This document shows, one piece after another, positions 1,101 through 62,612 of a DNA stretch of 64,000 bases; the stretch's first letter is position 1; each line of letters opens with the position of its first letter. The notes under the pieces are model-generated. The model was given only the letters and a program-made list of their open reading frames with translations, made no database searches and was not told the DNA's origin. This stretch comes from Oikopleura dioica. Its lineage: Eukaryota > Animalia > Chordata. Where the stretch lies: NCBI GenBank assembly GCA_907165135.1, contig OU015570.1, positions 248,001 to 312,000 of the forward strand, written 5' to 3'. The translations under genes and the position numbers were made by a program.

Positions 1101-4100
1101 CTATCAAGAGTCATTGAAACGTGTGAATATGCTCACTTTGCACCGGCCTCGCTCAAATTTGTTAAGATTATGCTCAACGGACTTAAATTTCCCTGCCTTA
1201 TCGATAGTGGCGCAAGTAGAACATGTTTCCGCTCAGATGTTCTAGATCTATTACCGTCAACTATCAACAAACAAATTCCATCTACAATCATGCTCAAGTG
1301 TGCGAACTCAGAAGTCTTCAATGTTAAAATGCTCAGCTCCCCAATTGACGTCAAATTCGAAACAAGCTCTTCGCCACTAAGATTGAAGTTGGATCCGCTC
1401 ATCGTTCAAAATTTATCGTGCCCGATCATTTTGGGAATGGATGCTCTCAAGGGGATAACGATCGGAGAAAAATCAGTCACTTTATGCAATAAGAAAATTC
1501 CAACAATAGATCCGAACTCAACTGATTTGTTCTTAACTGGTCTTATTGAAATCGACAAGAATTCTGGTCGTGAGAAAGAAGATTACGAAGCTTTCTTGAA
1601 GAGGCGATCAGAACAAGCCCAGAAAATCAATTTTGTTCCAGCTATTGGTTCTTATGGTGCAACTGACTCGAGACAAAAAGCTCAACTTGACGAACTGATT
1701 CAAAAATATCGACTCAGCTTCAATATGGACTCCGATGATCTAGGACGTCTATTCGGCTATCGATATTCGCTCCCGCTCTATGACAAAACAAAATCTTCAC
1801 ATCAACCTCCACGGAAAATTGCAATTCACCTACTGCCACAAGTCAGAGAACAAATTTCCACATGGAAAAAGCTCAACGTTATCCAAGAAACGCAATCATC
1901 ATTTAACATTCCTTTGATAATTCTTCGAAAATCTGATTCTTCTATCAGAATCTCACTTGATGCGAGAATGGTGAATGAGTTATTGCAAAAAGATCGCTTT
2001 CCATTACCAAGCATGCAAAGTGTTTTCACCTCTATTGGAAAGAAACTCAGTGGTAAAGAATGTTTCATAAGTTCAGTGGATTTCTTTCGTGGCTATTGGC
2101 AAGTGCTCATTAACGAAAAAGATGCACACAAAATGGCATTTTCATACGAAAACCAGCATTACCAAACTAATAGAATGCTCTATGGTTCTTGCAATGCTCC
2201 TGCCTGTTTCTCAAGAATAATGAATAAGCTGATGAAACACGAATCAATTCTTCTTTATCTTGATGATTTGGTGATCATTGACAACAACTGGGAAGACCAC
2301 CTGAAGGCACTTGAATTCGTTTTCAAAACCTGCCTAGAACATGGACTCGTTCTTAGTGCCAAGAAATGTCAACTCGCTAGCACTGAACTTGACTTCCTTG
2401 GTCACAGAATAACGGCTGATGGAATCAAACCGCTCAGAAAGCATCTAGAAGCGATTGAAAAATTATCACCACCCCGAGATAAAGCTGAACTTAAGAGATA
2501 TCTTGGAATGGTTAACTTCAATGTGAAATTTCTAAAGCGTGGAAGTGAAATTTTGGCTCCACTTTACCGTCTAACATCGGCAAAAGTGAATTATGAATGG
2601 TCTGAGATTCACCAAAACGCCTTCGAAAAAGTCAAAGAAGAACTTCTAAAAGAGCCAACATTAGCGCATTTCAAACCTGGATGTCAACTTGTTCTCGTCA
2701 TAGACTCCTCTGGATATGCAGTTGGAGGAACACTGTACCAAGTTCATAACGATCAATTTGCCGCTCTTGGATATTTCAGCAAAGCTCTAACACGACCTGA
2801 TCTTAAACGTCCAAAGAGAGTCAAAGAGCTCTTTGCACTTTGCTGGGGAATACAGTTTTTCGAGTACTACTTGATAAATTGTGAATTCGACTGCTATGTT
2901 GACCATAAATCCTTGTTGTATCTGTTCCGAGAATCACGAAGAAGAAAATTGGACATAAAACTATGCAATGTTCACAACTATCTTCTTGCGTTCAACTTCA
3001 CGATCATTCACAAAAGCGGAACGAGCCCAGAAATGGCTTCTGCAGATTTCTTTAGCAGACTTCCAAAATCAAAAAGCTCTTACCTTGAGAAACTCTCGGA
3101 AGATTTTTTCGATGTCGACGAAACAATCCTTGCGTTGTCAACTTTGTCAACTGACAATGTCATCTTTTCGTACGAAAATCGATCATTCACTGCTAACGAA
3201 ATGGCTGGTGCTCAAAACGCCTGCTCTGTTACAAAGAACCTTATCGTCAAAGCCGAATTAAACAAGTCACAGAAAAGACTGATGCTCAAAAACAATGTCC
3301 TCTACTCGAATGATAGACTCGTTCTCCCAGGCAACATTGCCGATGAATTTATTTCATATTTGCATGTCATAACAGCTCACTCCGGAAGTCAACAGCTCCT
3401 TCAAATGCTCAAGAAATTTTTCATCAGCAATATCCAGCAAAAAGTTCGATCAATTACAAGCTCATGTGAAACATGCATCCGACTCAAGCCGCTCAAAGGA
3501 ATGCGACCTTCGCTCATAAAGGATCGCCAGTTCGCTCAACTACCCTTTGAGAAAGTTCACATCGACCTCGTCGATTATGGAAGACCTGACGCTTCAGGCA
3601 AACGCTACTTGCTCACTGTAGTGGATAGTTTAAGTGGCTACCTCGATGGAGAAAGTTTATCAAACAAATCGGACAATCTTGTTGCAAAAGCCCTCCTGCG
3701 AATAATACTTCGGCATGGAATATCACAGAATTGCATTTCCGATAACGGAAGAGAATTCGGACCAAAAACAAGAGAAATTCTCGACCGATTTGGAATACGA
3801 CATAGTACAACCAGCGCTTATAACAGTAAGTCGAACGGAAAATGTGAGAGAATCCATCGCGAGATCCATCAGAAGCTCAAGAACCAATTTGCAACAAATC
3901 GCTCCTGGTCCGAATTCTGGCCACTGGTTCAATACTTTCTTAACAACGCTCCAAAAGGAAGTCTTGATGGTCTTTCAAGTAATGAAATCGTATATGGGAG
4001 ACAATTTCATATTCCTCACTCACTGAAAGAGCCAATCATTGAGAATGTCCAGCCATTCACAAAAGCTCTGAATGAATATATGAAGAAACTCCACCCAGCA

Positions 4101-4622
4101 TTGCTCAACTTTCAAGTCCAACGATACCAATCGCTGCTCAAAAGGGACAGAAATGATTGTCCAGTTCTCCCGATTGGTATATCTGTTCTTTGTTGGAAAC
4201 CTGATCTGTACGCTGGTAAACTTGGAATTCACTGGTCTGGACCATACAAAATTCATCGACGACTTTCAAAAGATAGTTACATCGTCAAGTCCCCGCTCAC
4301 AAAAAAGGAATATCGGCGTAACATCAGTCTGATCCGCCCGCTCAATCATAAGACTGATAATGACAGTACGAAATATATTTGCAGCGATAATGCTCACACC
4401 GACTGCAAAGAAAAAGACGAGAAAGCTCCAATTCAAACTCGTAGCTCACAAAATGTTCAAAGGCATCGATCTGATCCGACCGATGAAGAAAAGACTGCTC
4501 AAGATCACAATCCCTGCTCTAAAAGTCCCCTTACTGTAGTCAATGATCAACTACTGCTCAATGGAAGTGGGAATGAGGATTCAAAATGGAAAGGCCGTCT
4601 TCGCTCAAGACGCCAAAAGTAA
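1101..4622 (+). CDS. pol: Pol polyprotein (protease, RT, RNase H, integrase), intact
   Basis: LIDSGAS protease; VDFFRGYWQV and YLDD RT; DSSGYAVGG RNase H; H..H..CETC, HIDLVD, SDNGREF, NGKCERIHRE integrase; WSGPY GPY/F motif. Open from 1101 in the gag frame; first ATG at 1170. Confidence 0.97.
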   Translation, partial: LSRVIETCEYAHFAPASLKFVKIMLNGLKFPCLIDSGASRTCFRSDVLDLLPSTINKQIPSTIMLKCANSEVFNVKMLSSPIDVKFETSSSPLRLKLDPLIVQNLSCPIILGMDALKGITIGEKSVTLCNKKIPTIDPNSTDLFLTGLIEIDKNSGREKEDYEAFLKRRSEQAQKINFVPAIGSYGATDSRQKAQLDELIQKYRLSFNMDSDDLGRLFGYRYSLPLYDKTKSSHQPPRKIAIHLLPQVREQISTWKKLNVIQETQSSFNIPLIILRKSDSSIRISLDARMVNELLQKDRFPLPSMQSVFTSIGKKLSGKECFISSVDFFRGYWQVLINEKDAHKMAFSYENQHYQTNRMLYGSCNAPACFSRIMNKLMKHESILLYLDDLVIIDNNWEDHLKALEFVFKTCLEHGLVLSAKKCQLASTELDFLGHRITADGIKPLRKHLEAIEKLSPPRDKAELKRYLGMVNFNVKFLKRGSEILAPLYRLTSAKVNYEWSEIHQNAFEKVKEELLKEPTLAHFKPGCQLVLVIDSSGYAVGGTLYQVHNDQFAALGYFSKALTRPDLKRPKRVKELFALCWGIQFFEYYLINCEFDCYVDHKSLLYLFRESRRRKLDIKLCNVHNYLLAFNFTIIHKSGTSPEMASADFFSRLPKSKSSYLEKLSEDFFDVDETILALSTLSTDNVIFSYENRSFTANEMAGAQNACSVTKNLIVKAELNKSQKRLMLKNNVLYSNDRLVLPGNIADEFISYLHVITAHSGSQQLLQMLKKFFISNIQQKVRSITSSCETCIRLKPLKGMRPSLIKDRQFAQLPFEKVHIDLVDYGRPDASGKRYLLTVVDSLSGYLDGESLSNKSDNLVAKALLRIILRHGISQNCISDNGREFGPKTREILDRFGIRHSTTSAYNSKSNGKCERIHREIHQKLKNQFATNRSWSEFWPLVQYFLNNAPKGSLDGLSSNEIVYGRQFHIPHSLKEPIIENVQPFTKALNEYMKKLHPALLNFQVQRYQSLLKRDRNDCPVLPIGISVLCWKPDLYAGKLGIHWSGPYKIHRRLSKDSYIVKSPLTKKEYRRNISLIRPLNHKTDNDSTKYICSDNAHTDCKEKDEKAPIQTRSSQNVQRHRSDPTDEEKTAQDHNPCSKSPLTVVNDQLLLNGSGNEDSKWKGRLRSRRQK

Positions 4623-4822: not shown

Positions 4823-5483
4823 ATGTACAAGTTACTGGGCCCCTCTACTTGGACCACTATTCTTAACCTTGCGTCGGACTTCTCCAGATGTTGGCAATGT
4901 GTGCAGTTGCCGAATCACACAATATTCGAAAATGGATCTAAAATGGCATCATCCCAGCTCAATGGCACAATGCAAAGCCTTTTAAAAAAAAGGGGGAAGA
5001 GAAAAAGTGAAACTGCTCGCTCACTACGGAATTTCAATTTAAGTGCTCGCAAATTGAAACATGATACCAAAGAAGTGAAACTGCTCGATCACTTAGGGAT
5101 AACCAATTTCATTGCTCTTGAAATTGAAAAACGCTATGGTGAAAACTGCTCGATTCACCAAGGAAAATTTTGGCATTGTTAACGAGATCATTCGCGGAAA
5201 TCAAAATTTTGGAAGATTACAAATTATAATGAAGAAACTGGTCGAAAAATCTCCATGCCATTAAAGAAAGAGAGGAATTCGCTGTGTGACAATAATTGCA
5301 AAAGTAGAATTTCAAAATAAGATTCACAAGAAAAGAAAAACTGCATTTCACACTTTGTCACGTGACGCGCAGAAAAAAGCTGCAGGTGTGCGCGCAAAAC
5401 GGCGGAACAAACAAAAATCACCTGAAAAACTTGGAAAAAAAAATCTCATTCTTTCAGAAAAAGAAATGAGAGATGGCTTCTGA
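4823..5483 (+). pseudogene. Degenerate basic accessory ORF 3' of pol
   Basis: ORF 4823..5182 continues in frame past TAA (RDHSRKSKFWKIT...) and overlaps the K/R-rich ORF 5286..5483. No recognisable domain. Confidence 0.3.
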
Positions 5484-6303
5484 AAGAGGAGCAATTTATG
5501 AGAATTTCTTTTATTTTCAAAATGAAGATGTGAAGAAGCGATTCTTACAATTCTCGCTACCGTTTATATGTGGATATACGCTAAACCTCTACGAGTTGAG
5601 AAGAGAGTCTAAGACACACATTTTTCGAGATTATCTCCAGACAATATCGGATGTTTTGACAAAAATCACAGAAGCAAATCAGTATACATATCAGATTGAT
5701 AATCTGCATATGAGTGGAAACCTGGCTTCCGTAGAGACATTACTGGAGTGGTGCTTCAGAGCGCTGATTTTTCGATTTTCAAACGCAGAACAGGAAGAAA
5801 TTACACCAATAATCGTGGAAAATTTTGAAAAACAATTCTATGGAAGAAGACATCTCTGGATCGGAATGAAGCAAATAAATGAAGTGAACTTATCTGCTGC
5901 TATCAGAAAGGCTGAACTGCTTTTCTATGACCACTTGGAGAATGTCGGAATCAGAAGTTTTTCTTTCTGCGTTGCTGAAAAGCCAATGCAAACATCACAT
6001 CAGCAACCAATTTTCATCCCTCGAAACGAAGATTCCCAATACCCCCAACTTAAAAATAAAGACCTTCTCGACTTTCTTGTGACAAAAACTGTCAATGAAA
6101 ACAACCCGACTTCTCACAATTCGAGCCAGCAAATTCAGCGAAACCCAATCGATGAAATTTTCGGAAAAGCAAATAACGATTCACCACCTGGTTACGAAAG
6201 CTCCTCAAATGACAGCTCCTCTAGTGTATGCTCAACTGACGCCGACAATCTTGACAAAACATTGGAAAACAATGCTCTTTTTAAAAGGGGGAAGAATATA
6301 TAG
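5473..6303 (+). CDS. Accessory ORF of unknown function (276 aa), not env-like
   Basis: ATG-started open frame between pol and the PPT. No signal peptide or TM segment visible; low-complexity C-terminus containing PPGY. Confidence 0.6.
   Translation: MASERGAIYENFFYFQNEDVKKRFLQFSLPFICGYTLNLYELRRESKTHIFRDYLQTISDVLTKITEANQYTYQIDNLHMSGNLASVETLLEWCFRALIFRFSNAEQEEITPIIVENFEKQFYGRRHLWIGMKQINEVNLSAAIRKAELLFYDHLENVGIRSFSFCVAEKPMQTSHQQPIFIPRNEDSQYPQLKNKDLLDFLVTKTVNENNPTSHNSSQQIQRNPIDEIFGKANNDSPPGYESSSNDSSSSVCSTDADNLDKTLENNALFKRGKNI
6278..6299 (+). promoter_or_regulatory. Polypurine tract preceded by a T-run
   Basis: TTTTT-AAAAGGGGGAAGA immediately before the putative LTR. Confidence 0.65.
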
Positions 6304-12873: not shown

Positions 12874-13022
12874 ACCATCTTGGGTGATTTTGCATTTTTG
12901 CCTACTTTGCGGCCTCATTATTACTCAACCCTTTTATAATTTATTTTGGAAAAAGGGTCAAAATGCTTGTTGTTGTATTCGACTAAATGCGAAAAAGATC
13001 CCAATTATAATAGCAAACAACC

Positions 13023-13094
13023 GGTGAGATGGTGTAATGGTTAACACACCGCGCTACGTAGCTAGAGTCCTAGGTTCGATTCCTAGTCTTAACA
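13023..13094 (+). tRNA. tRNA-like cloverleaf in 5' LTR (non-decoding)
   Basis: D stem GTGT/ACAC; T arm CTAGG-TTCGATT-CCTAG; acceptor 6/7 paired; anticodon stem unpaired. Confidence 0.7.
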
Positions 13095-13424
13095 AAACAT
13101 TTTCATTCTTGTTGTGACGGGACCACAACAAATTGGTGGTAGCAATGGCAGGGTTGTCTGAGGCAGGGACACCCTGAGAACCATAAAAGCAAGTACAGTG
13201 TGGATTCAAAGGCAGGCGGGTAAAACTAGCGAAATTGGCAAAAAGCATGCCAAGCCCAAAAGCAGAGTGAAATAAAATCCTTAGAAAGGTAATGTCAACG
13301 CTAGGACACGGCCATAAGGTGAACCACACGCGGAAAGCATAGCATACCCAGAATAATTGGCATCTTGGGGGATGTTGTATTCGACTAAATGCGACAAAGA
13401 TCCCAATTATAATAGCAAACAACC

Positions 13425-13496
13425 GGTGAGATGGTGTAATGGTTAACACACCGCGCTACGTAGCTAGAGTCCTAGGTTCGATTCCTAGTCTTACCA
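13425..13496 (+). tRNA. tRNA-like cloverleaf in 3' LTR (non-decoding)
   Basis: 72 nt; 7/7 acceptor GGTGAGA/TCTTACC with discriminator A; perfect D and T arms; A and B boxes; TTTT at 13502-13505. Only 2 of 5 anticodon-stem pairs form. Confidence 0.78.
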
Positions 13497-14097
13497 AAAC
13501 ATTTTCATTCTTGTTGTGACGGGACCACAACATTGTTTATTACAGTTGTTTCACATATCTAATTTTGAGAATCATACGAGCATTATTTCGGGTAGCTATT
13601 TTTTGAGCGTGGACCCTACTTATATCCTGTCATAATGAGGGGATTAGTACAGTAACTCGGTGTGAAGCCGGTGTCGCGCAGCGTCGAGCGCGCCTATTCA
13701 GCCAAAATCATGCAGATTCCCCACCGCGCGAAGGGGGCTTCCTGATAAATCCCCTGATTACGATCTTATACAAATAAAAATCGAAGACAACGCGAACTTG
13801 GACCTGGTCAAAATTGAATGCGCTTTTTGATGAGGGTATATATAACTTCGAGTGACAAGTATTTTAGGAGCTGATTCCTTTTGAAGTTGAGCGTCACTTT
13901 TTCTCTCTCCTGAATTTAAAAATTATGATATGAAAAAAATCTCCAATTCAAATTGGAGAACAAAGAGGAGAAAAATTAAGACTAGATCTGATATTTTCAT
14001 GAAATTTGATGAAGGTAAGAAAAAGTTCTGCGCTCCTGAAAAGCGGCGCGAGCTCGCTTCGGGTGGTCCCTTAATCAACCAGGACTGTGTATTTAAT

Positions 14098-16368: not shown

Positions 16369-18629
16369 TTATTCTACAGGAAAAGTTAAAACAGGCGGAA
16401 AGAAAACATTTGTCAGTGGAGTTCCAAGTTGTTTGGTGAGTGGAATGATATTTTCCTGGATAAAATCTTTCGGAGAATTATGAATGTAGATGATAATAAA
16501 TTGAACCCAATCGTATTTATCTCGGACTTCTTTCGCCCGAAAGTTAAAATCCTCGTTTTCAACGCTGAGTGAATTCTCAAATTTGAAATCAAAGATTTTG
16601 TCACTCGCGTTTGCGATAGAGTTCGAATTATTATCAAATAATTGTTTTAGTTTACTGTTAATCGATTCCGAATAATTGTTCGTTAAATTAAATTCCTGGC
16701 TACATAGATTTCCGTAAAGATTCCATCCATTGCGAGAAGAACTATTTACATAAGTAGCAATAAAATATTTAACAAATTGACGAAAACCAGGCTGAAATGA
16801 TTCAGAAAAGGTCAAAATGTAGTCGTTCAGAGCGGCAAAGAAATGGTCAAGATAAGAAGGATCAAGGAATGGCAGTCCTTTCATCAAATTAAAAAACTCG
16901 CGAACTTCCGGATTTTTTGAAGGGAGAAATTTCGTAAATTCTTTTAGCTTTTTTTTTAATGATTCCAGAAGATAGTAATAACATTGAGAAACAGTCCCAT
17001 CGAACTGTTTTTCAAAAGAATGTTTAACTCCCGGTTCAAAATCAGTAAGAAGAAAAGAAATTTGTAATGGGCGGTTGAATCTCAGTTGATATCTGTCTTT
17101 TAACAAGCAAAATAATTTATCATATAGTTCAATCTTGCGAGATTTCATAAAAGCGAAGATAATTGGATAAGCTCGACTTTTTTCAGGATCAGATTGACAC
17201 GGAAGGCGCGCTGACATAATATATAGTTGTTGAAAATCAAGATTTCGCACAGGAGTCCATGTCCCGTCTCCAAATACTGGTGAGAATTCTGGCATATGAT
17301 AATCTTTTCTAGAAGAGTGATTCATAAGATCAAGCTCATGCTCTAAATAAAAAACTGTCATATCCTCATTTTCTACTTGTAGAAAATCAACTTGCACATC
17401 TTTTTTAAGCTCTCGATCGAATATGAACATTTTTTTATTTAGCTCAGGAACTTGATCTTTCGCCACACTTTCTGTTGATCGCTGTATCGTTTTTTTAACA
17501 AGTTCCGAAATTTTCTTTTTATCATAGCCAATCTCATCATTGACTCGTCCTGTTGAAATAATTTTATTTATACCAGAAGTATTGAATACTTTCCGAGTCT
17601 GGTTTTGGTGTGAACTCCTTGCGATATCTTTATTGACACTTCGAAAAGACTGATTTATAATAGCAAGAGGCAGTTTCTCGCAAGAATGATTATTTTCAGC
17701 AGTAATAAGTTCATAATTTGATAGGTTATATCTATCAGAATACTCGAAATTGAATTTGTATCTTTTTCGCATTTGAATTTTGACTTCGGTTTCATTCTTA
17801 CGTTTTTTTGTTTCTTTGAGTTCGGTGATGATCATTTCTTCCTTCATGCATTTAACTTTGGCTTTGGCTTTACATTTCTTTTCTGAGCACTCAAGTAAAA
17901 TCATGGATGCAGAACTGGCGCTCTGAATGACGAGTTTTCGTCTGGTATTCTTTTCTCCATGCTGTATCCACCAAGCAACTCCGTTTCTTCGGTTCGATTC
18001 TGTAATTCCGATCAACTCTCCGCGTTCTTCAGAGCCTCTTATTTCATCAGTATCAAAAGTTTCAAGGGTCGTCACTTCCAACCTTTCGGGATCCCGAATG
18101 TTTCGGGATTTCCCGAATGTTTCGGGATTTGTCCCGAATCTTTCGGGATTTCCCGAATCTTTCGGGATCGCCCGAATCTTTCGGGAGTTTTGTTGAGGAT
18201 AACGTTAAAAAAAGTGGCATAAATGCCGAATTAGGGCATTTTACTAATCAAAAAGATCACTCTATCTGCCTTCGTCGACTTCGATGGTCTAAGAAGGCCA
18301 GACTTTTTATAAATGTTGAATTTGTAGTCAAAGAGAATGTGTGCGCTCCGCGTCTGTTTTATAGAGTAATTCATGAGTTATAGATCCATTTTTTCGAGTT
18401 AATTATTTTTTTTCCTTCGCGCCTCCATTTTCTCCAATAAAGATGTACTTTAACGTTACTGTTTGGGTTTAAATATTTTCTTGGACAAAAATTATTGAAA
18501 ATCATCCCCGAAAGGTTCGAAGACAAAAAGGCCCTTTTTTACTGCGAACGTTTCGGGAAATCCCGAAACATTCGGGATCCCGAAGGGTTGGAAGATTCAA
18601 CCAGTTTCAAGTTGTTTTTTCAAATCCAT
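16369..18629 (-). CDS. Mutator (MULE) transposase; true start at 18629, interrupted by a MITE
   Basis: N-terminal C-x4-C...HxC finger; FGDGTW (D), LTDFE (D), TNNYSESIN (E); CxxH reads CYYY. Removing 18067-18602 plus one TSD copy gives MDLKKQLETFDTDE in frame. The element's own TIRs were not found. Confidence 0.9.
18067..18602. mobile_element. MULE-type MITE, 536 bp
   Basis: Perfect 9-bp TSD AGTTTCAAG at 18058-18066 and 18603-18611; TIR core CTTCCAACC(T/C)TTCGGGATCCCGAA; partial second copy at about 24615-24786. Confidence 0.92.
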
Positions 18630-27125: not shown

Positions 27126-28570
27126 ATGTCGAACAACCCATCTAGTATGATTGATGCTAAGGCTAACGCCCGAAGCTACGAACCGTACCGCAACCTCAGC
27201 GATTCGCAGAAACCGCCGAAGTTGTGCACGGATATTCCCCGGCAATGACGAAAATCATCTATGAAGCATGGCTGGCTCATTTTGACAGCTACGTTTCGAA
27301 GCGAATTCTAGCCAGAAGCCCAAAAAACCCATACGCTCAATTCAGCATCGATTTACCGTGCCTCTGGGATACACCCTCAGGCAGAGACATGCCGAATTGG
27401 ACGGGCTCGTGCGGTATCCCGAGCACCTTGAATGAGTTTTTGAATTGGAAGGCCACCTTTCCGAAAAGGTGCAGAGGCAAAGGCATGATTGAGTTCATCG
27501 GAGTCGATGACGACCTCAAGGACGGAGTTCTCATTTACGAAGGACCCATCGACTTGGAGGGAAGACCAGAAGGACAAAACCAAATTAATAAAGTCTTCAT
27601 TAACTTCTTCTTCCCAGGTCTGTCCAATTTTGAAAACTGGAACGAAGAAGCGAACCTCAGGTTTGCGAGGGAAGCCGTACGCAGGGCCGGGGAGACTTTC
27701 ATCACCCATTGCCGCCCGGATCACAAGAACGCAGTGAGACGATGGCAACTGGCATCAGTCAGAGCTTATGTCGACAAGCTCATTGAAGACCTGGAAGGCC
27801 CTAGCAAGAAGCCGGAATTCTTCAGGTGGTTCGCGCTGCTTCGAATGATGGCGAACAAGGAATACGCAGCCTTTACGGTCAAGAGCAAGATCGATTTGGC
27901 CCGCCCGGTCATGAGGAACAACCTGGGCGACTATTCCCGCGAAGCGGTCTCCATCGGCTACAGCTTCGAAAGGGCGGACTTCAACGAAGCCGAAGGATGG
28001 ACGCCGTTGATGGAACTTACAGCTTTCTTGAGTGGAATTCTTCCCAACTCAGAGAAGGACCTCGTGGCCATTCTGGAGTCGTTGGCGACCAGGGTTGACA
28101 AGGACAACGAATCGATCGATTTGAAGACGGTCCTCGAAAACCAACAATTCATCCTTGGGAAGTTCGAGAGGAACGCCAGAGATGACCTGCTCAACATTTG
28201 CCACGAGAAGTGGGAGTTGAGCTATGTTTGCGACCCCGAGAACCCCATGCGAGCCTATCAGGATGTGGTCGACCAGGAGGCCAAAGCCGTCAAAGAGGCT
28301 GATAAGAAGGAAAAGCCCAAGTTCAACAAATGGGCTCCGGAACGCAGGGACAAGAAGAAGCCCCCGGAATACCAAGCCAACGCCGTCTACTCTCGAAGCG
28401 ATCTGATCGTTGACGCGAACACTGGCAAGGTGTTTGCGGAGGTGAAAGAGCTCAAAATGTCCCAACAGGAGCTCGGCAGGGTGGACCAAGACAAGATCCG
28501 CTGGATGTCGAGAGGCAGATTCAGCCGACAAGTCAAGGCCAAGGTCGCGATGGCCAAGAAGGACTTGTAG
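27126..28570 (+). CDS. gag: gag-like ORF of second Ty3/gypsy element (probable 5' frameshift)
   Basis: 448-aa open frame from 27224 with ATG at 27126 in another frame; lies after a PBS and before an in-frame protease. No motif-level gag proof. Confidence 0.65.
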
Positions 28571-29839
28571 TCGAGATCGTGGGGCCCGAAACTACTTCCG
28601 GGCAAAAAGTTTAAGGCGGTTGCTTTGGAAGAAGTTAAGCGCGAGCTCGACAACATCCAACGAGTTATCAGAAACGAAGCAGGAGGTTGGCATTTAGCCC
28701 AAGAAGACGACAACAACGAGAAGACCGACAGCGACGAAGAGGAGATCACAGCCACGTCTGGAGAAGCAACCTCATCGTCTGAAGAAGGTTTGTCCGATGA
28801 ATTTGTTAAGGGGAATAACCGCATTTTTAGACTCTTAAGAGACATCCGCTCGGCAAAAGAAGAACATGCGGTCTTCAAAAAATACGATAAAAGAAATGTT
28901 TACCTTAAATTCGACTACATATCTGTTGTAGAAAACAATTCGGCTAGTAAAATTGAAACTAGGAATACTTACACTTTGGTTTCTGATACAGGAGCGAAAA
29001 CGACCCTAATTAATTGCAGGTTTTTGAAACAACTAGAGGAAAATAAATGCTCGGTTCGCAGAGAATCATGTATGCGAATAGGTTCAACGGCAGGCGGAGG
29101 GAAACTTAGGTTGTTGCCTTTTGCAGTGTCGTTTTCGTTATTTTTGGGAGCTTTGAACATTAAATCAGTGGACGCAGCCGTCCACGAAGGAAAGGACGAT
29201 AACTGGATCCTGCTTGGTGTGAGAGACTGGCAACCGAACGGTATCGAATTCAAAGCCGTCGATGGAGAAACCAAGATCGTGATCAACGATCAGCCTTTGG
29301 AGGATTATTGGACGTTTGTGAATCATGTGGAAGTGGAGGACCAAGAGTGGTCGGCCTTGAGCAGAGAATTTAATAAGATTGTCACGGAGTCTTTAGTCGC
29401 AGAAGTGAGCATCAGGTCAGAAATCGACCCAAATGACGAATTAGCCTCAATATTCTTCGATATGAAACCCACTGACAAAATAAATCCAGACGTCATGTGT
29501 GAATTTTGGAGGAAAATCGAGCAAATTCACGAGGAAAACAACAAAATCAACACAGTTGATGAGGTGATTATTGATGAATTCGGGGAAATTCTGGATTTGA
29601 ACGATCTCGAAGACAAAAATTCCTCAGGAAAATAAAAACTGCTCTTGAAGTATTTTGTCGATTTCTCGAAGACTCAGGGCGTAGTACCAGATGATCAATT
29701 CATCGTCCACGGTGAGATCAAAGCAAACCCGACAGGCAAGTTCGCTGATAAATCTTTCGAGAGATGGTCTCCTGAAGTCCAAGAACTAGTTATTAATAAA
29801 CTCAACAATGAGCCTGCAGAAAGAATTTTAAAGCCGTGA
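28571..29839 (+). pseudogene. pol: Truncated pol: acidic linker, aspartic protease, pre-RT region
   Basis: Same frame as gag after TAG; LVSDTGAKTTLIN and ILLGVRD protease motifs; TAA at 29633-29635 then in frame to 29839. RT and IN absent; cut by a CAGGGG-starting insertion at 29841. Confidence 0.8.
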
Positions 29840-34631: not shown

Positions 34632-34861
34632 TTAAAATATTATACAGTCGTGGCAGAACTGCCAACAAATTTCGAACTCTGCGGTTCGGGAACGCAGCAC
34701 TTACAAAGGGTGCGGAAACTCCTCACACCACTTAACTAAAGCCTTTAGCATTAACTTCTTCCAGAAATATAGGTATGTGCTTTTTAAAATTTGCTATAAT
34801 CCCGGAAATATGGCCCTAAAAAGGCAGAAATTAGCGACGCGCAGCTCGCTCAGCGCGCGAT

Positions 34862-37119
34862 TGTAGGGCTCGAACAAGTCGAACCCTTATGGTTAAAAAG
34901 TATGAACTCTCTTTTAATTTGATAATTTGGTTTATTGCGAATATTCCGAATCTTGTCCCGCTTCTCGAGAGTCAGTTGGAGCACAGCTTATAAGGTGGTC
35001 GTAAATGGTAGTGCATAGAGACGCCCCTGGTGACCAGAGGATTGTGGATCGACTTATCGAACCCCACAATTCTCGGGCCTCCGGGGACATCCGGTCAATG
35101 GACGGTAAAGTGGCCCATGTGAGAGAAAATAAGTTGGATCGAAAAAGTTTTTAATCCATCTCTTCTGGCGGCACAAGCGGTCGTCGTTTTTTTTAGGTTT
35201 AAATAATCATATATGTGCATTTAAGGGAATGTCAGATCTGCATCATGACTGAGAATGATTATGAATTCAGTTTGTCAAAAGCGCGATAACACAGCTTGAT
35301 CGATGAACGCCAGTTAGAAAAGGAGTTATGGTGCGCGCTTTCTCTCTTGAGCTCACGCTTTGCCATAAAAGCTAAAGGACATGAATTAAAATAAAGATTT
35401 TGCTATGGAGCAAATGATGGACACGCTAGGACAAATAGAAATAAGAAAAGTGAGAATGAAATAAGCTATTGAATAAGATATAATAAATAAGACTTATGAT
35501 AAGAAAACAAAAGACTTGAGAGAAATGAAAAATATAAGCAGTAATAATTGACTTCTTTGGATTTCTTGGCGTTTTGCGGCGGACTGATAACACTAGGCTA
35601 CGATGAGTTGTACCTCGCATATTCTTGGTATCATCCAGTGAAGTAGTTTTGTTTCCTTCATTCCTTCTTTCTGCTCCTGAGATTGTTAGGAATGAGGCTC
35701 CGCTTCGCAGCGTTTCGGCTTGCGTGTGCGTCGAAACTCATCTTTCCGAACCCGGCCGGGGTTTTTCTTCGAATCTTCCTGATTTTCTGGTGACTTCCTC
35801 CAATTTTTGCTCATTAGGTCCCCTGCTGCATTATCTTTCCAATATTCTCTCAAAGAGCAGCATCATGTTTTGCTTTTTTCCGTTTCATCTCTTCTCTTCT
35901 TTCCATCACATATCGTATTCATCTCATCTTATCAATTGAGCCAATTCATTATTTTGAGTCAGAATCGTAAGTCACATACGAGTTCGAATCATCTTCCGAG
36001 TCGGTGTCACTTGAGGCATATGAGTAGCAGTCAGTGCAGCTAGACGAGTACTCATCATCAAAAGATCTCGATGATGATGATTCGCTCTCGTACATCCGGG
36101 AGACTAGAGATTCGAGCGCGTTGGTAAAGTCGTCGATGTTCTCGGTAGCGTCGTACTCGTCGTCTCTTAATCTGTTCCAGATGTCTAAAGCATCACCATT
36201 CGTTTTGTTCATGGACATAAAAATGGCTGCATCAGGTTTCAGGTTGTAGGTGTTTTTGAAAACCTCGATTTTTCTGACGAATCGTTGAACAGAGATCAGG
36301 TCCTCTTCTTCTGTACAGTTGTAGGGACGATGCCATGTCGGAGCGAATTCCAAGTGTTCTCTTTCGTATTTCGTAAGATCCATGTTTTCCCCTCTCTGGT
36401 AAGATCTGTTCCGTTGATGGTTGGTTTCGGTTTATCACCGAGAAGCTGCTGCGTATGCACGGTGGTAATTATCACAATTATCCAAAAGGTTAATTGGTGC
36501 ATATCAGCGGATGAATCTTACGGGGTAATTACGCTGTTAATTTGATGGTTGTTCGCTGACGGTGACCGCAAATTGCGTCGTTGATCTTTGGACGGTGAAG
36601 TTTACGGAGTTTTTTCTTTGGATAAGAAGGGTGTTTATCCAACAGGCGAATCGAGTTTCCAAGTCTCTGTGATGGTGTCCGTGTAGGTATGCCAATCGCG
36701 GGGTCGTTGGGTGTGTATTGAAGGTGTTTTTGTGTTCTGGCTAAGATTGATGCGGTTCGGTGATGTGTTTTGTTGGTGAGTTTTGCGTGGTGTTGTTGTG
36801 CTGCAGTTATAGTCTGTTATTTTCGACGTCTCTAGTGTAGAAGTGTTGTGTTGGCTGTGGTGGATGGCTCTCTCTTCGACCGGAGCGTCAGCTCGACACT
36901 TCAGTCACCATTTGTAGGGCTCGAACAAGTCGAACCCTTATGGTTAAAAAGTATGAACTCTCTTTTAATTTGATAATTTGGTTTATTGCGAATATTCCGA
37001 ATCTTGTCCCGCTTCTCGAGAGTCAGTTGGAGCACAGCTTATAAGGTGGTCGTAAATGGTAGTGCATAGAGACGCCCCTGGTGACCAGAGGATTGTGGAT
37101 CGACTTATCGAACCCCACA
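34862..37119 (-). mobile_element. Young non-autonomous LTR element, 2258 bp, gag-like ORF only
   Basis: Apparently identical 207-bp LTRs (34862-35068, 36913-37119), TG...CA ends, TSD CGAT, minus-strand PBS TGGTGACTGAAG (36910-36899), TATA and AATAAA on the minus strand; empty-site paralog at about 8295. Confidence 0.95.
35949..36383 (-). CDS. Gag capsid-like ORF (144 aa) with Ser/Asp-rich tail
   Basis: SVQRFVRKIEVF...GDALDIWNRL resembles retrotransposon gag; position inside an LTR element supports the call. Confidence 0.55.
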   Translation of the reverse strand: MDLTKYEREHLEFAPTWHRPYNCTEEEDLISVQRFVRKIEVFKNTYNLKPDAAIFMSMNKTNGDALDIWNRLRDDEYDATENIDDFTNALESLVSRMYESESSSSRSFDDEYSSSCTDCYSYASSDTDSEDDSNSYVTYDSDSK

Positions 37120-38221
37120 CGATGGCCTAGGGGCACCGCAAGGGTGGCAACGTTCAAACTTCTTCGGAAATTAATTATTTTTCAAATTTCCTTAATTAAG
37201 AAACAAAAATCAAAAAATGATAATAAAAATAAAAAAATAACTATAAAAAACTTAAGAAAAACTAATTTTTAAATAAAATCACATATTAAAGGAATGATTT
37301 AAAACATTATTTATTATTTGTAAAAACCATAATTTAAGAAAATAAGTGAATAATAAGCCTAACTTAGAATACGGGTGAGGGTGGGGGTGGGGACATGGCT
37401 GAGACAAATAAAGAAAGGTGAAAGCCCCGGCCTATGTCAAGCCCATTTAAAATTAAAAGCCAGGGACGGGGCTGAGACGGCCCGAAGGGCGGTCAATACT
37501 GAAAATGGCACGAATGGCACGGATGGCACAAACTCACTGAAAATGGCCCGAAAACAGAGACACATTTTTTTGCGAATTTACCTTGAGGAATATTATGAAT
37601 TAAACTTGGGAATTAACGGATTTAGTTGTAACGATAATTATTTAACAACTTGAAAAGTTTTTTCTGAAAATGGCACGACGAAAAGACCTGTTTTCGGGCG
37701 ATTCGTGCCATTCGTGACATTCGTGCCATTCGTGCCATTTTCAGTACTGTCGCGAAGGGCCGTCTAGCCCACTTAAAATTAAAAGCCAGGGACGGGGCTG
37801 AGACGGCCCGAAGGGCCGTCAAGCCCATTGAAAATTAAAAGGCAGGGACGGGGCTGAGACGGCCCGAAAGGCCGTCAAGCCCATTTTAAATTAAAAGCTA
37901 GGGACGGCCCGAAGATTTTAAACTTTCCTAAAATGGTCATTTTGTGCCAGACTTGCATTGTAGCATCTTATCTTTTGGCTTTTATAGGAAATGGATAATT
38001 TCCTGAAATAAATTAATAAATTAGTTATTTTGAAAAATTAATAATTTAGACCCTTTTTCATATTTCTAGGGCTTTTGTTTAAAAAGATTCTCAATATTTA
38101 TGATTTTAGAGCCATTTTATGAGGGTTACTTGAGTTAGCAAAAGCGCCAGACAGCGCTCTGGTCTGTTTTCTTTGTGAACACCCTTGGAGCGCCTGAGGC
38201 ATCGCGCCGCGCGCTCTTTAA

Positions 38222-38704: not shown

Positions 38705-39530
38705 TTAAAAATAGCTCATAATTTACCATAAAATGTCAATTTCGTAAAATTGAGGCCATCCTCCAAAAAAGGATTTCAGTTTCGAATTAAGAAGACAAAA
38801 TAACATATTTTTAACATTCTTAATTTTAAAAAACGGGCCATCTTGGGTGATTTTGAATTTTTACCCACTTTGCGCCCTCATAGTTTCTCAACCCTTTTAT
38901 AGATTTTTTTGGTTAAAGTGTCAAAATGCTTGTTTTTTATAGTTGTCTAGCATATCTTATTTTGAGAATTATACGAGCATTATTTCGGGTAGCTATTTTT
39001 TGAGCGTGGACCCTAATCATATTTGCTCAAGGCCTCAACCGTCTTACACGGAAGTTGCTCTGAGCTCGGGCTAGATGTAGCCTGGGGCGCACTGGTTATA
39101 TCGCCGAATGTCGCCGAATGTCGCTGAATGTCGCCGAATGTCGCCGAATGTCGCCACTTATTTTCAAATAATAGGGATTATGAAAGAAAATTGTTTTTTT
39201 GCCTAAATTTTCAAAACAAACTTGTTTTAGAAACGAAAAACGCGGAAATAGTAGAATGCGCGGCAAAAGAAGGGCAAAAGAACATTCGGCGACATTCGGC
39301 GACATTCGGCGACATTCAGCGACATTCGGCGACATTCGGCGACATGTAGCCTCCTTGGGAGTAAGCACTCGTCGGTGGGGCCCTTGCATCCTCTAAGCTC
39401 TGTTGGAGACCTTGCCGTTAAAGTTTGACCTCAACTCAAAGAGGCCCTTCGAAGTTAAAGTCATGTTTAAGCTTTAAATAGGCAGTGCACTATTCTTTTT
39501 ATAAATCTCGTATTTGATCTCAAGGAACAG

Positions 39531-46785: not shown

Positions 46786-49033
46786 GGCTAGGGTGGTCAA
46801 TTAGGCCCAAAGCAAGGCTCATAAACTCTGGACTTGTGAATGCCAGAGTACCCCATAAATTACTCGGGTATCATCTTTCACCATGCCGAGTTTCAACAAG
46901 ATAGGATTCATAGGGAAAAAGTTGATTTTTTGTAAATTCACCCTACCCATAATAGCTTTTAAGGATATACCCGATAAAATTGAACTTTTATATCGCCGAA
47001 ATGCTACGTAGGATCATTTATACAGTTTTTATGGAATTTGTGGACATCAAATTTGTGTACATTTTTAGGGAAAGCCCTTGTAATGTAGCGAATGTCCCCA
47101 ATGTCCCGAATGTCCCCGATTTTTTACTTTTTTGGTCTTTTGAAAAAAATTTATCACATGGAAAAACAGAAATTTTTCAAAACAATTTTGTTCTAGAGAC
47201 GAGTTTTTGCCAAATTCTATGAGTTTTCTACCACAAATTGCGCGGAGCGCTACCTTATTTTTGACTTTTTGTCAAAACAATGGCGTTCTAGAGAGAAAAA
47301 GCTGTTGTTGAGTTCTTGTTTTCCAGTGTTTTTGTAAGAATTGACGGGGACATTCGGAACATTCGGGACATTCGGGACATTCGGGGACATTCGGGACATT
47401 CGGGGACATTCGGGGACATTCGCTACATAGTCAGTGTCTACCTTTTTTAGATTTTAAGGGGTTTTCTTGGGACACATGAAAAAGAGAGGGTATCAAATGT
47501 GTGGACATTTTTATCAATAAAAATCTTGCAAAGAGCTGTTTTTCGTCAGAAATATTAATTTTTTAAAGATTTACGTCTCAAGCTTCCTTCTTGTGTTCTT
47601 TTTCTTATTATTTTTTGAAAAAATCATCAATTTTTCCTTCTCAAAAAATAATTTAAGCAAGATTGTTAGGGAATTTTTTCGGGGCTCTGTATCAAATTTG
47701 TGGACATTTTTCAGAAAACTAGGGGACAAAAAATGTCCACAAATTCCATAAATAACTGTATTTCAAAAGCAATTCTACGTTAACATGTACGTTGAACTCA
47801 AATCTGGTACTTCTTTACATTTTCTTATTTGAATTTTTCTCTTTAGAGCGATTTCAAATCTTACTCTCTCGATTACTCGAAATTTTTGTATAAATCGGGC
47901 GAGATTTTTAGATGGATGAGTTCTTTGGACCCTTATCTACAATTTTGATGGTTTACTTTTCGTTAATTCCGAAGGAGACCGATTCTAGAGCCATTTCACT
48001 GAGGGCTACTCAACGCGTAAAAGCTCTACAAAGCGGCGCGCTGGGAGCTCACTCACTCGACTCCTCTTTTCCGAGAGAAAGTCCGTGGTTGAGCGCACCG
48101 CCCTGATTGGTAGTACGCGGAAAAACGCGCAGAGAAGAAAAACAAAGGTATGAAAGAAGAGAACACTAGAATGAAAATTCGATCGAGTTTAAGAATTTGA
48201 TCCCATCACTTTTGTGGCTTAGCATCATTGCAATACAGAATACGGTTCAATTTTAGCGATTAAGTGGAAAAATTTCGAGAAATCGAGAGAGTTCGTTTTC
48301 AAATCGCTCTAGAGAGGAAAATTCTAACGAAAATTTCTAAAAAGTACAAGAATTTAATTAAACGCACAATTTTAAGTAAGATTGCTTTTGAAATAAAAAT
48401 GATCCGTATTTAGGCGCTATGAAAGTTCAATTTTATCGGGTATATCCTTAATAAAGATCTTTCTTAGATCTTCTGAATTACAGAAGCTAATTCCGTAATC
48501 CCAAGGAAAAAGCCACTTCCGGCGGCTTCAAATTTGGCATCGCGGCTAAAATCGCGAAAATAGCCCATCTTCAGGGGTCCAAAACTCCAAAGTTTACACA
48601 ATGGTCCTATCAACTCTAACTCTTTTTAGGTTTCCTAGACCGTAATCTCAAAATTTACAGAATTTTTTTATTTGATAACTTTTTCTTAAAAATTTTTTCA
48701 ATAAACCAAGGTACCTATATTTGACTATTCATTCCTATAAATTGCCCTTCGGGCAAAGCCCAGACGCCCTCAGCCCTACCCTTAATGAATGTGCTGAATG
48801 TAAGCTTTCTAAAAATGAATCATGTGAAGCTATTGTTAAGGGTAAAAATTTCATAATATTGGGTTCACTTTCAAAATATACTTATTTTCTGCACTTTTAG
48901 TCGCAATTTCCCGGAGATCGAGTTGAGATAGCGAAAAAGTGAATGCGGAGTTTTTTGCTCAAAATTTCCTGAGGAATCCAAAAATGCGGGTCAAAAAGAA
49001 TCTCAGACTTGCTCAAAATCGACCACCCTAGCC
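46786..49033. mobile_element. Kolobok-type (TTAA, GG..CC) non-autonomous element with nested MITEs
   Basis: TTAA-GGCTAGGGTGGTC...GACCACCCTAGCC-TTAA. Confidence 0.75.
47069..47442. mobile_element. MITE with ATGTCCC(C)GA repeats nested in Tc1-type MITE copy C
   Basis: Absent from the paralog at 57889; flanks ATTTTTAG / TTTTTTAG; inner TIR ATGTAGCGAATGTCCCC. Confidence 0.8.
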
Positions 49034-52655: not shown

Positions 52656-52823
52656 TGAGGAGCGATCTTGTCAGTCGCTCGCTCGGAATATCTCGCCCAA
52701 AAGGCCGATTGTGATCACTGTGAAGTAGTGTAGTGGTAACACATCCCAACCGCGGGGCGGAAATCTCTGGTTCGATCCCAGACTTCATCTAATCCTTTTT
52801 CGCCCATAGTCTCAAACCTTACA
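52656..52823 (+). mobile_element. Solo-LTR-like insert (TG..CA, 168 bp) containing a tRNA-like cloverleaf
   Basis: Absent from the paralog near 43000 (GATTTTCAGGGTTT|CAATACCTG); GTTT duplicated on both sides. Confidence 0.65.
52719..52790 (+). tRNA. tRNA-like cloverleaf (Val-like D arm), anticodon arm broken
   Basis: TAGTGTAGTGGTAACAC D arm; TCTGG-TTCGATC-CCAGA T arm; 6/7 acceptor pairs; TTTTT at 52796-52800. Confidence 0.7.
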
Positions 52824-57397: not shown

Positions 57398-58828
57398 AAG
57401 TCTCTTACATAAATGTCTTATATTTACGCAAAAAGAAGATCCAAAAATGATTTATGACATTCAATCTCAACTTCATGCTTGGTTATAATTAGGGACTATC
57501 ACTTCTCGTTAGACGAGATTTTTGGGCGTCGGGGACTCGCAGTAGCAAAGCTTATTGGTACTGGGAGTACCAATTTCGGCTTTTCGAATGATATTTTAAT
57601 AAGATTTTTCAGTCGGAACAATAGTAGGCGGGTAAATACCGTGATTATCATTTCTGAGTGACTATTCTTGTCCGCCTACGCTCGTCATTTTAATATTTTC
57701 GCATGGGAAAAATGTTATAACGAAAAATTGTCAATGTTAATTGACGGAGCGAAGGCGGACATAGTAGTCATCTAGAAATGATAATCGCGTTAGAAGAGTA
57801 GCCTGTCCGAATCATTAAGTTTCTTACCACAGAACCTGCGGAGCGGGCGTTCCTGGATGATTAAAAGTTTGCTTTGCCAGAATTGGTACAGTTTTTATGG
57901 AATTTGTGGACATCAAATTTGTGGACATTTTTAGATTTTGAGGGGTTTTCTTGGGACACATGAAAAAGAGAGGGTATCAAATTTGTGGACATTTTTGTCA
58001 ATAAAAATCTTGCAAAGAGCTGTTTTTCGTCAGAAATATTAATTTTTTAAAGATTTACGTCTCAAGCTTCCTTCTTGTGTTCTTTTTCTTATTATTTTTT
58101 GAAAAAATCATCAATTTTTCCTTCTCAAAAAATAATTTAAGCAAGATTGTTAGGGAATTTTTTCGGGGCTCTGTATCAAATTTGTGGACATTTTTCAGAA
58201 AACTAGGGGACAAAAAATGTCCACAAATTCCATAAATAACTGTACTTGGAGTAACAAATTGGTACTGGCAGATAAACAACCAGAAGCTCCTCCCGGCTAT
58301 ACAGAATCAGAATCATCAGCAGCTTATACTCTTCAACAGCTGATCAATCATAACTTCCATTAAAAAGAAGGAAAGATGTTTATTAGTGTTACGATCTTGC
58401 GAGCGCTCTTCCTTGCAAAAACAGGCGCTGAGCCCATTTCTCACTCGTAGCTATTTTCAAACGATCTTCTATCTTACCGACGCGACAGAATCTTCCAACT
58501 GCACCAAATACACGAAGCTAAAAATATATAAGTCACTAAAAACGTTAAAAATCTCATCCGCACGAAGTAAAACAGAATATAAAGACTCTGCTCTTAGTTC
58601 AAAACACTCTTCTATTTTTCGTCTCGCGTCACAAATATACTCATACTATTACAAACAAACCCGTCTAGAGATTTTCTGCATTTATCGTGATCATAACTCT
58701 AACAGATTCTTCCGGCATCCTTCGTGTGCGTGTATTTTAGGTTTTTTCGGCGAATGAAATTGCCCGTTTAACGTGTTACTTTCTTTAGAATTGTCGAAAC
58801 AGACAAGATTCTTATTAATCTTATGAAG

Positions 58829-62292: not shown

Positions 62293-62612
62293 TTAAAATA
62301 ATTTTTATTGCAAAAACAATCTGAATTTTTGTAACGGCGTTACAAAATTGTAACGTAGCCGCTCGTCCCCCGTCCTTTGTAATCAGAAGATCTACAGAAC
62401 ATTTGAGCTGATCGCGAATTATGTGCCAACAGACTCGAAAGAGATCTTAAATTCTCATTTACCACCATTGACACTTCACCAAATTTGCAGATCGTGTATC
62501 TGCGATACATTTCCTCACGGCAGTCTACTTCAAACAGGTGTTTTTCACTCATACCAATGTAGCTCGGTAATGATGACAGTACTTGAAGTGTTCCTAGATT
62601 CTTTGATTGGTA

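Follow-up and report, generated by a model that had tools for sequence, protein, structure and literature searches.

A probable Helenus-type mini LTR retrotransposon with tRNA-like sequences in both LTRs

The 562-bp element at positions 12971-13532 of the window, the 64,000-nucleotide stretch of DNA that was analysed, most likely belongs to the TRIMs of Helenus type (TRIMp3), mini LTR retrotransposons which encode no protein and bear a tRNA-derived sequence in their LTRs, where it probably provides an internal Pol III promoter. The probability of this reading is put at roughly 0.8. The Helenus class was named by Kojima in 2024 ("Helenus and Ajax...", PMC10886601) and is defined as TRIMs of less than 1000 bp with a tRNA-derived sequence inside their LTRs, while TRIMp3 is the collective name for Helenus, Ajax and Cassandra (PMC10886601). 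Helenus comprises more than 200 families, whose hosts are fungi, a single plant and animals of six phyla, and is considered to be probably polyphyletic (PMC10886601).

Architecture and insertion site

The element is delimited by two direct repeats of 160 nt which constitute its 5' LTR (12971-13130) and 3' LTR (13373-13532), and all of its parts are given on the forward strand. The two LTRs (direct repeat family D1) are spaced 402 bp apart, agree at 158 of 160 positions (98.75%) and match each other with an E value of 3e-78 in a BLAST search within the window. The two mismatches, 12993/13395 and 13092/13494, both oppose an A to a C. Each LTR begins with TGTTGT and ends with ACAACA and is of the TG..CA type. 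A leader of 52 nt (12971-13022), which includes the AT-rich palindrome ATTATAAT at 13004-13011, is followed in the 5' LTR by a 72-nt tRNA-like sequence (13023-13094) and a TTTT (13100-13103), and in the 3' LTR the corresponding tRNA-like sequence and TTTT are located at 13425-13496 and 13502-13505, respectively. The LTRs enclose a non-coding internal region of 242 bp (13131-13372), in which the primer-binding site TGGTGGTAGCA (13134-13144) starts 3 nt past the 5' LTR and the polypurine tract GGGGGA (13367-13372) directly adjoins the 3' LTR. The composition of this core is biased towards A and G (88 A, 68 G, 46 C and 40 T), TTT is absent from it, and BLAST detects no similarity to it elsewhere in the window. 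Its sole open frame runs antisense and would encode 131 aa, for which exact look-up, a word-indexed search and a full HMMER search returned no homolog, and the same three protein searches yielded nothing when the frame was used as a handle for other copies of the element. With a length below 1000 bp, two LTRs and no coding capacity, the element is a non-autonomous LTR element.

The element is flanked by a TTGT on either side (12967-12970 and 13533-13536), and both flanks are parts of one dispersed repeat of which a second copy is present on the same strand at 38838-39022. This paralogous copy has no insertion, is 88% identical over 185 bp and contains only one TTGT, and its alignment continues unbroken across the insertion point, so that the boundaries of the insertion and the 4-bp target-site duplication are fixed to the base. 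The 4-bp duplication shows, together with the exactness of the empty site, that the element entered this site by integrase-type integration, and the 98.75% identity of the LTRs shows that it did so recently. Since the tRNA-like sequence is present in both LTRs, it was already within the LTR of the RNA that was copied. The original prediction had described a complete TRIM with 160-bp LTRs, TG..CA ends, a 4-bp duplication, a primer-binding site, a polypurine tract and a 242-bp non-coding core, together with an empty-site paralog, all of which were found.

The repeat into which the element inserted belongs to a family of inverted pairs of short tandem arrays with units of 9-41 bp. The window is packed with such pairs, for instance 11647-11705/12818-12860, 39101-39155/39282-39345, 50814-50868/51244-51298 and 26098-26210/32176-32290, and they resemble the subterminal repeats of MITE-like DNA transposons. 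A direct repeat of another sort is formed by 47444-47776 and 57928-58260, two copies of approximately 330 nt which lie 10.5 kb apart and are 99% identical over 300 nt. This pair was considered as LTRs and rejected, as TG..CA ends are absent.

The tRNA-like sequences and the distribution of T runs

Each LTR gives a single match to the Rfam tRNA family RF00005, and both matches exceed its gathering score of 29, the 72-nt sequence in the 5' LTR scoring 38.3 bits and that in the 3' LTR 47.1 bits. The LTR repeat structure and the tRNA matches are well past chance expectation. When arranged in the standard cloverleaf layout, the acceptor stem forms all seven pairs in the 3' LTR and six of seven in the 5' LTR, where the A at 13092 disrupts the G2-C71 pair and leaves a G2.A71 mismatch. 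The D stem (4/4) and the T stem (5/5) are intact and the anticodon stem retains only two of its five pairs. This is mirrored by the predicted fold of the 3' LTR copy, which retains the acceptor, D and T arms and has no anticodon arm. A perfect 10-nt palindrome, GCTACGTAGC, occupies the expected position of the anticodon stem-loop in both LTRs (13053-13062 and 13455-13464); it was considered as a dimerisation signal and discarded, because the window contains such palindromes at a rate of about two per kb. ARAGORN makes no tRNA call across the entire window, which fits the broken anticodon arm, and by its stem pairing, its predicted fold and the ARAGORN result the sequence does not qualify as a functional tRNA gene. 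The cloverleaf that had been predicted for each LTR, with its acceptor, D and T arms, A and B boxes and downstream TTTT, is thus borne out, as is the destruction of its anticodon stem.

No position of the B box GGTTCGATTCC (13073-13083) departs from the consensus. The textbook A box consensus is TRGCNNAGTGG, and the A box TGGTGTAATGG (13030-13040) agrees with it at 9 of 11 positions. Judged from its sequence, this part of the LTR is derived from a tRNA, has retained the promoter boxes and does not decode. A third tRNA-like sequence is present on the forward strand at 52719-52790, which scores 36.7 bits against the Rfam tRNA model, has a mismatch in the first acceptor pair and occurs only once in the window. 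It probably represents a tRNA pseudogene or the head of a SINE. Its likeness to the LTR sequences is merely generic tRNA similarity, and it was dismissed as a relative of them.

The sense strand of the element contains T runs of three or more at two places only, the TTTT at 13100-13103 and that at 13502-13505, each of which begins 6 nt past the end of its tRNA-like sequence. In contrast, the same strand contains eight A runs of at least four. Among 12,722 window segments of 398 nt, taken from either strand, none is free of TTT and only 3% are free of TTTT. The low T content (20%) explains part of the missing T runs, and mononucleotide shuffling of the segment gives p = 0.047 for the lack of TTT. 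A strand-specific lack of Pol III terminators, as is seen in SINEs, is indirect evidence that fits what may be expected of a Pol III template.

The LTR and the core were both used to search the window with BLAST, and no additional copy of the family was detected. A 20-mer from the anticodon region has no match in metagenome, viral or prokaryote genome collections. A pattern combining the D arm and the B box retrieved 41 loci from metagenomes, of which 40 are called by ARAGORN, all as ordinary tRNAs, for the most part of the His and Gly types, and outside the tRNA part none of the 41 resembles the LTR. A tRNA-like repeat of eukaryotic appearance is common to two contigs of metagenome ERZ1740055 (L019:119-191 and L039:2352-2422), where it is preceded by a conserved leader of some 30 nt and followed by a T run, and L039 has a second copy 4.4 kb away; this repeat is a different tRNA-derived family which is unrelated to the element in the window.

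It is conceivable, if unlikely, that the tRNA-like sequence is a mere passenger in a TRIM driven by Pol II, having landed as a tRNA pseudogene or SINE in one parental LTR and then been copied to both without any role in transcription. The proposed origin of Helenus is itself a SINE insertion into an LTR (PMC10886601), which implies that a neutral early stage of this kind must exist. The near-perfect arms could merely reflect a recent capture, and the element is known from a single copy. The promoter required by such an element would have to fit into the leader, where the AT-rich motif ATTATAAT speaks for it and the length of just 52 nt upstream of the tRNA-like sequence speaks against it, leaving little space for a Pol II promoter. 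AATAAA is likewise absent from the LTR. A passenger would also sit poorly with a sense strand that is free of T runs except right after each tRNA-like sequence, and with a layout that recurs independently in more than 200 described families.

Primer binding and proposed mode of propagation

For the primer, a shorter alternative of 8 nt, TGGTAGCA, would match the 3' end of the metazoan initiator tRNA. The site as a whole, TGGTGGTAGCA, is one base off the sites complementary to tRNA-Leu-AAG, TGGTGGCAGC, which are found in Gypsy-130_CGi, Gypsy-57_CaAu and Helenus-2_TheEle (Kojima Fig. S2, PMC10886601). The differing T would face G70 of the tRNA, where a G.U pair would keep a pairing of 10 nt. The primer ends that would fit the site are a tRNA-Leu ending in ...TGCTACCA-CCA or, with the G.U pair, one ending in ...TGCTGCCA-CCA.

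For a Helenus-type TRIM with this anatomy it is proposed that TFIIIC would recognise both the A box and the B box in the 5' LTR and that Pol III would start just upstream of 13023. Some of the transcripts may pass the TTTT at 13100, a candidate weak Pol III terminator, and this read-through is assumed for the production of full-length RNA. Such an RNA would cross the primer-binding site, the core without T runs and the purine tract and would end where the 3' LTR has its TTTT (13502), giving a length of about 485 nt. Under this scheme R would roughly correspond to the tRNA-like sequence plus its trailer, U3 to the 52-nt leader and U5 to the last 27 nt of the LTR. A host tRNA, for which a 3' end of the tRNA-Leu type is the best fit, would prime reverse transcription, and a Ty3/gypsy element that makes 4-bp duplications would supply reverse transcriptase and integrase in trans. 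The tRNA-like sequence would play no decoding part. What counts against this mechanism is that most Pol III transcripts from the 5' LTR would meet the TTTT after about 80 nt, and it is this proximity to the start that makes read-through necessary for the full-length RNA.

A partner that could act in this way is not apparent in the sequences covered, as no autonomous element which shares the primer-binding site, the LTR ends or internal sequence is present in the window or in two related gypsy contigs (L042 and L043). The 8-mers of the primer-binding site are absent from both contigs, and the window has only one further instance of such an 8-mer, TGGTGGTA on the minus strand at 62467, which is unrelated.

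The TRIM does share the window with gypsy pol genes and with a second young LTR element that has a 4-bp duplication. A Ty3/gypsy pol gene with reverse transcriptase, RNase H and integrase domains extends over 1170-4622 on the forward strand and is accompanied by a possible gag (330-848) and a further open reading frame (5473-6303), with the 5' end of the element located beyond the start of the window. The closest named relatives of this pol are from Oikopleura dioica (49-50% identity at the amino acid level), the next named ones are at about 25%, and marine-metagenome proteins reach 73-74%. These relationships suggest a marine animal as the host, for which another appendicularian tunicate is a possibility at about even odds. 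No link to the TRIM by primer site or LTR was found for this pol element. The second small LTR element (34858-37123, 2.26 kb) has LTRs of 207 nt that are 100% identical (34862-35068 and 36913-37119), TG..CA ends and a 4-bp duplication, CGAT; no primer site of the TGG type is found directly past its 5' LTR, and its frame of 160 aa has no Pfam match. The youth of this element and its CGAT duplication indicate that integrases which duplicate 4 bp have recently been active here. A fragment of another LTR retrotransposon is probably represented by 27167-29632 on the forward strand, where there are two consecutive open frames, the second of which matches a retroviral-type aspartyl protease. On the minus strand, an open frame of 611 codons (16372-18204; 570 aa when counted from a TTG) has no Pfam family and no homolog in a collection of 5.8 billion proteins, and ten further open frames of the window have no Pfam match.

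A more elaborate scheme holds that the product of the LTR gene is processed to a tRNA-like RNA with a CCA tail and serves a separate function, such as priming the reverse transcription of the element. It extends the idea of the original prediction that the acceptor, D and T arms persist for RNase P/Z and CCA processing, which finds no support in the single copy at hand. The scheme draws on the intact acceptor, D and T arms of the 3' LTR copy and on the complementarity between the 3' end of the tRNA-like sequence plus CCA (TACCACCA) and TGGTGGTA at 13134-13141. This complementarity extends over 8 nt, of which three are the TGG that is obligatory for any tRNA primer, and the same site is paired over 10 nt, with one G.U, by a 3' end of the tRNA-Leu-AAG type, the use of which is documented for both Gypsy and Helenus (PMC10886601). 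Kojima sought complementarity of this kind in Helenus and found none (PMC10886601), and a cut by RNase Z at the 5' LTR copy would sever the genomic RNA that serves as the template. The scheme is very improbable. Much the same applies to its fullest form, a far-fetched one, in which the element would be the first Helenus outside the lineages of Kojima, possibly from an appendicularian tunicate, and the CCA-tailed LTR RNA would anneal to the primer-binding site of its own element, which would explain why three arms have been kept. If this were true, the element would supply both its own promoter and its own primer.

A local tandem duplication of a segment with a tRNA pseudogene, which would account for two direct repeats 402 bp apart, is for practical purposes refuted by the empty site at 38838-39022, against which the 562-bp unit and one TTGT stand out as a clean insertion, and is further opposed by the TG..CA ends and by a primer-binding site and purine tract placed exactly at the inner LTR borders.

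Relation to Helenus and to other known systems

The assignment to Helenus rests on the tRNA-derived sequence in the LTRs, the primer-binding site after the 5' LTR, the polypurine tract before the 3' LTR and the 4-bp duplication. Animal Helenus make 4-bp duplications and have primer sites complementary to the 3' ends of tRNAs; these sites are common only to Gypsy elements, which are the proposed movers (PMC10886601). Their LTRs have TGT...ACA ends and a leader that precedes the tRNA-like sequence, after which a T run comes within a few nucleotides and 20-40 nt remain to the end, and their internal regions open with 0-3 nt followed by TGG... and close in a G-rich purine run, for which 3' ends such as ...gggggaggaa and ...gggggagta are given (PMC10886601). 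The LTR and internal region of the element in the window agree point for point with this published layout, including the TG..CA ends, the 4-bp duplication, the tRNA-complementary primer site, the G-rich purine tract and, in each LTR, a B box with GGTTC and a T run behind the tRNA-like sequence, and like the published members it has no functional tRNA. Its dimensions also lie within the published ranges, the total being 562 bp (311-1263), the LTR 160 bp (104-323) and the internal region 242 bp (43-621). A difference lies in the A box. Most Helenus have the A box motif TRGCY (box A TRGCY..YGG) and a box B with GGTTC (PMC10886601), whereas the box A of this single element reads TGGTG...TGG, which keeps TRG and YGG and lacks CY.

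Ten k-mers of 10-14 nt drawn from the LTR ends, D arm, T arm, anticodon region and primer site have no match in the consensus file of Kojima when searched as exact words in lines wrapped at 70 nt, which makes this a weak test, and only two generic 8-mers of the element occur there within unrelated fungal LTRs. No family listed by Kojima has the dimensions 160/242/562. Set apart in this way by exact k-mers and dimensions, it is to be regarded as a new and separate family of the already described Helenus/TRIMp3 kind, and its host lineage is probably absent from the Helenus list of Kojima. The original prediction knew of no described example, which is mistaken, since Kojima 2024 describes the class with more than 200 families, the same LTR layout and the 4-bp duplication (PMC10886601). 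Its proposal of a tRNA-based counterpart to the plant element Cassandra was well founded, as tRNA-derived sequences with Pol III boxes are present in both LTRs of a TRIM.

Cassandra is a plant TRIM whose LTRs contain a Pol III promoter and terminator derived from 5S rRNA (Kalendar et al. 2008, as summarised in PMC10886601). Like Cassandra, the element is a TRIM with a small-RNA gene, an internal Pol III promoter (in a putative role here) and a terminator in the LTRs, and in both cases the 5' LTR copy is the presumed start of transcription and the 3' LTR copy its presumed end. They differ in that Cassandra uses 5S rRNA, occurs in plants and has been shown experimentally to be transcribed by Pol III, whereas the present element uses a tRNA and is a candidate for such transcription. 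Among TRIMp3, Pol III transcription has been validated for Cassandra only and not for Helenus (PMC10886601). With tRNA-derived SINEs (SINE2) the element shares its small size, a head that resembles a tRNA and contains A and B boxes, the decay of the anticodon arm and a sense strand in which T runs are avoided. However, SINEs are without LTRs, primer site and purine tract, and they are moved by LINE enzymes through target-primed reverse transcription, which leaves variable and longer duplications. Plant retrozymes are similar in being non-autonomous, non-coding LTR elements with a small structured RNA motif in each LTR, but their motif is a self-cleaving hammerhead ribozyme that yields circular RNA, and Rfam finds no match to a ribozyme family in the element described here.

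This family does not open a new category of element. It adds to a class named only in 2024 a very young and well-resolved insertion, of which the ends, the duplication and the empty site are all found in the same window. Elements of the Helenus type inflate tRNA gene predictions and should therefore be masked as repeats. A copy as young as this one would be suited to showing that the tRNA-like sequence of the LTR drives transcription by Pol III, the demonstration that is still missing for Helenus.
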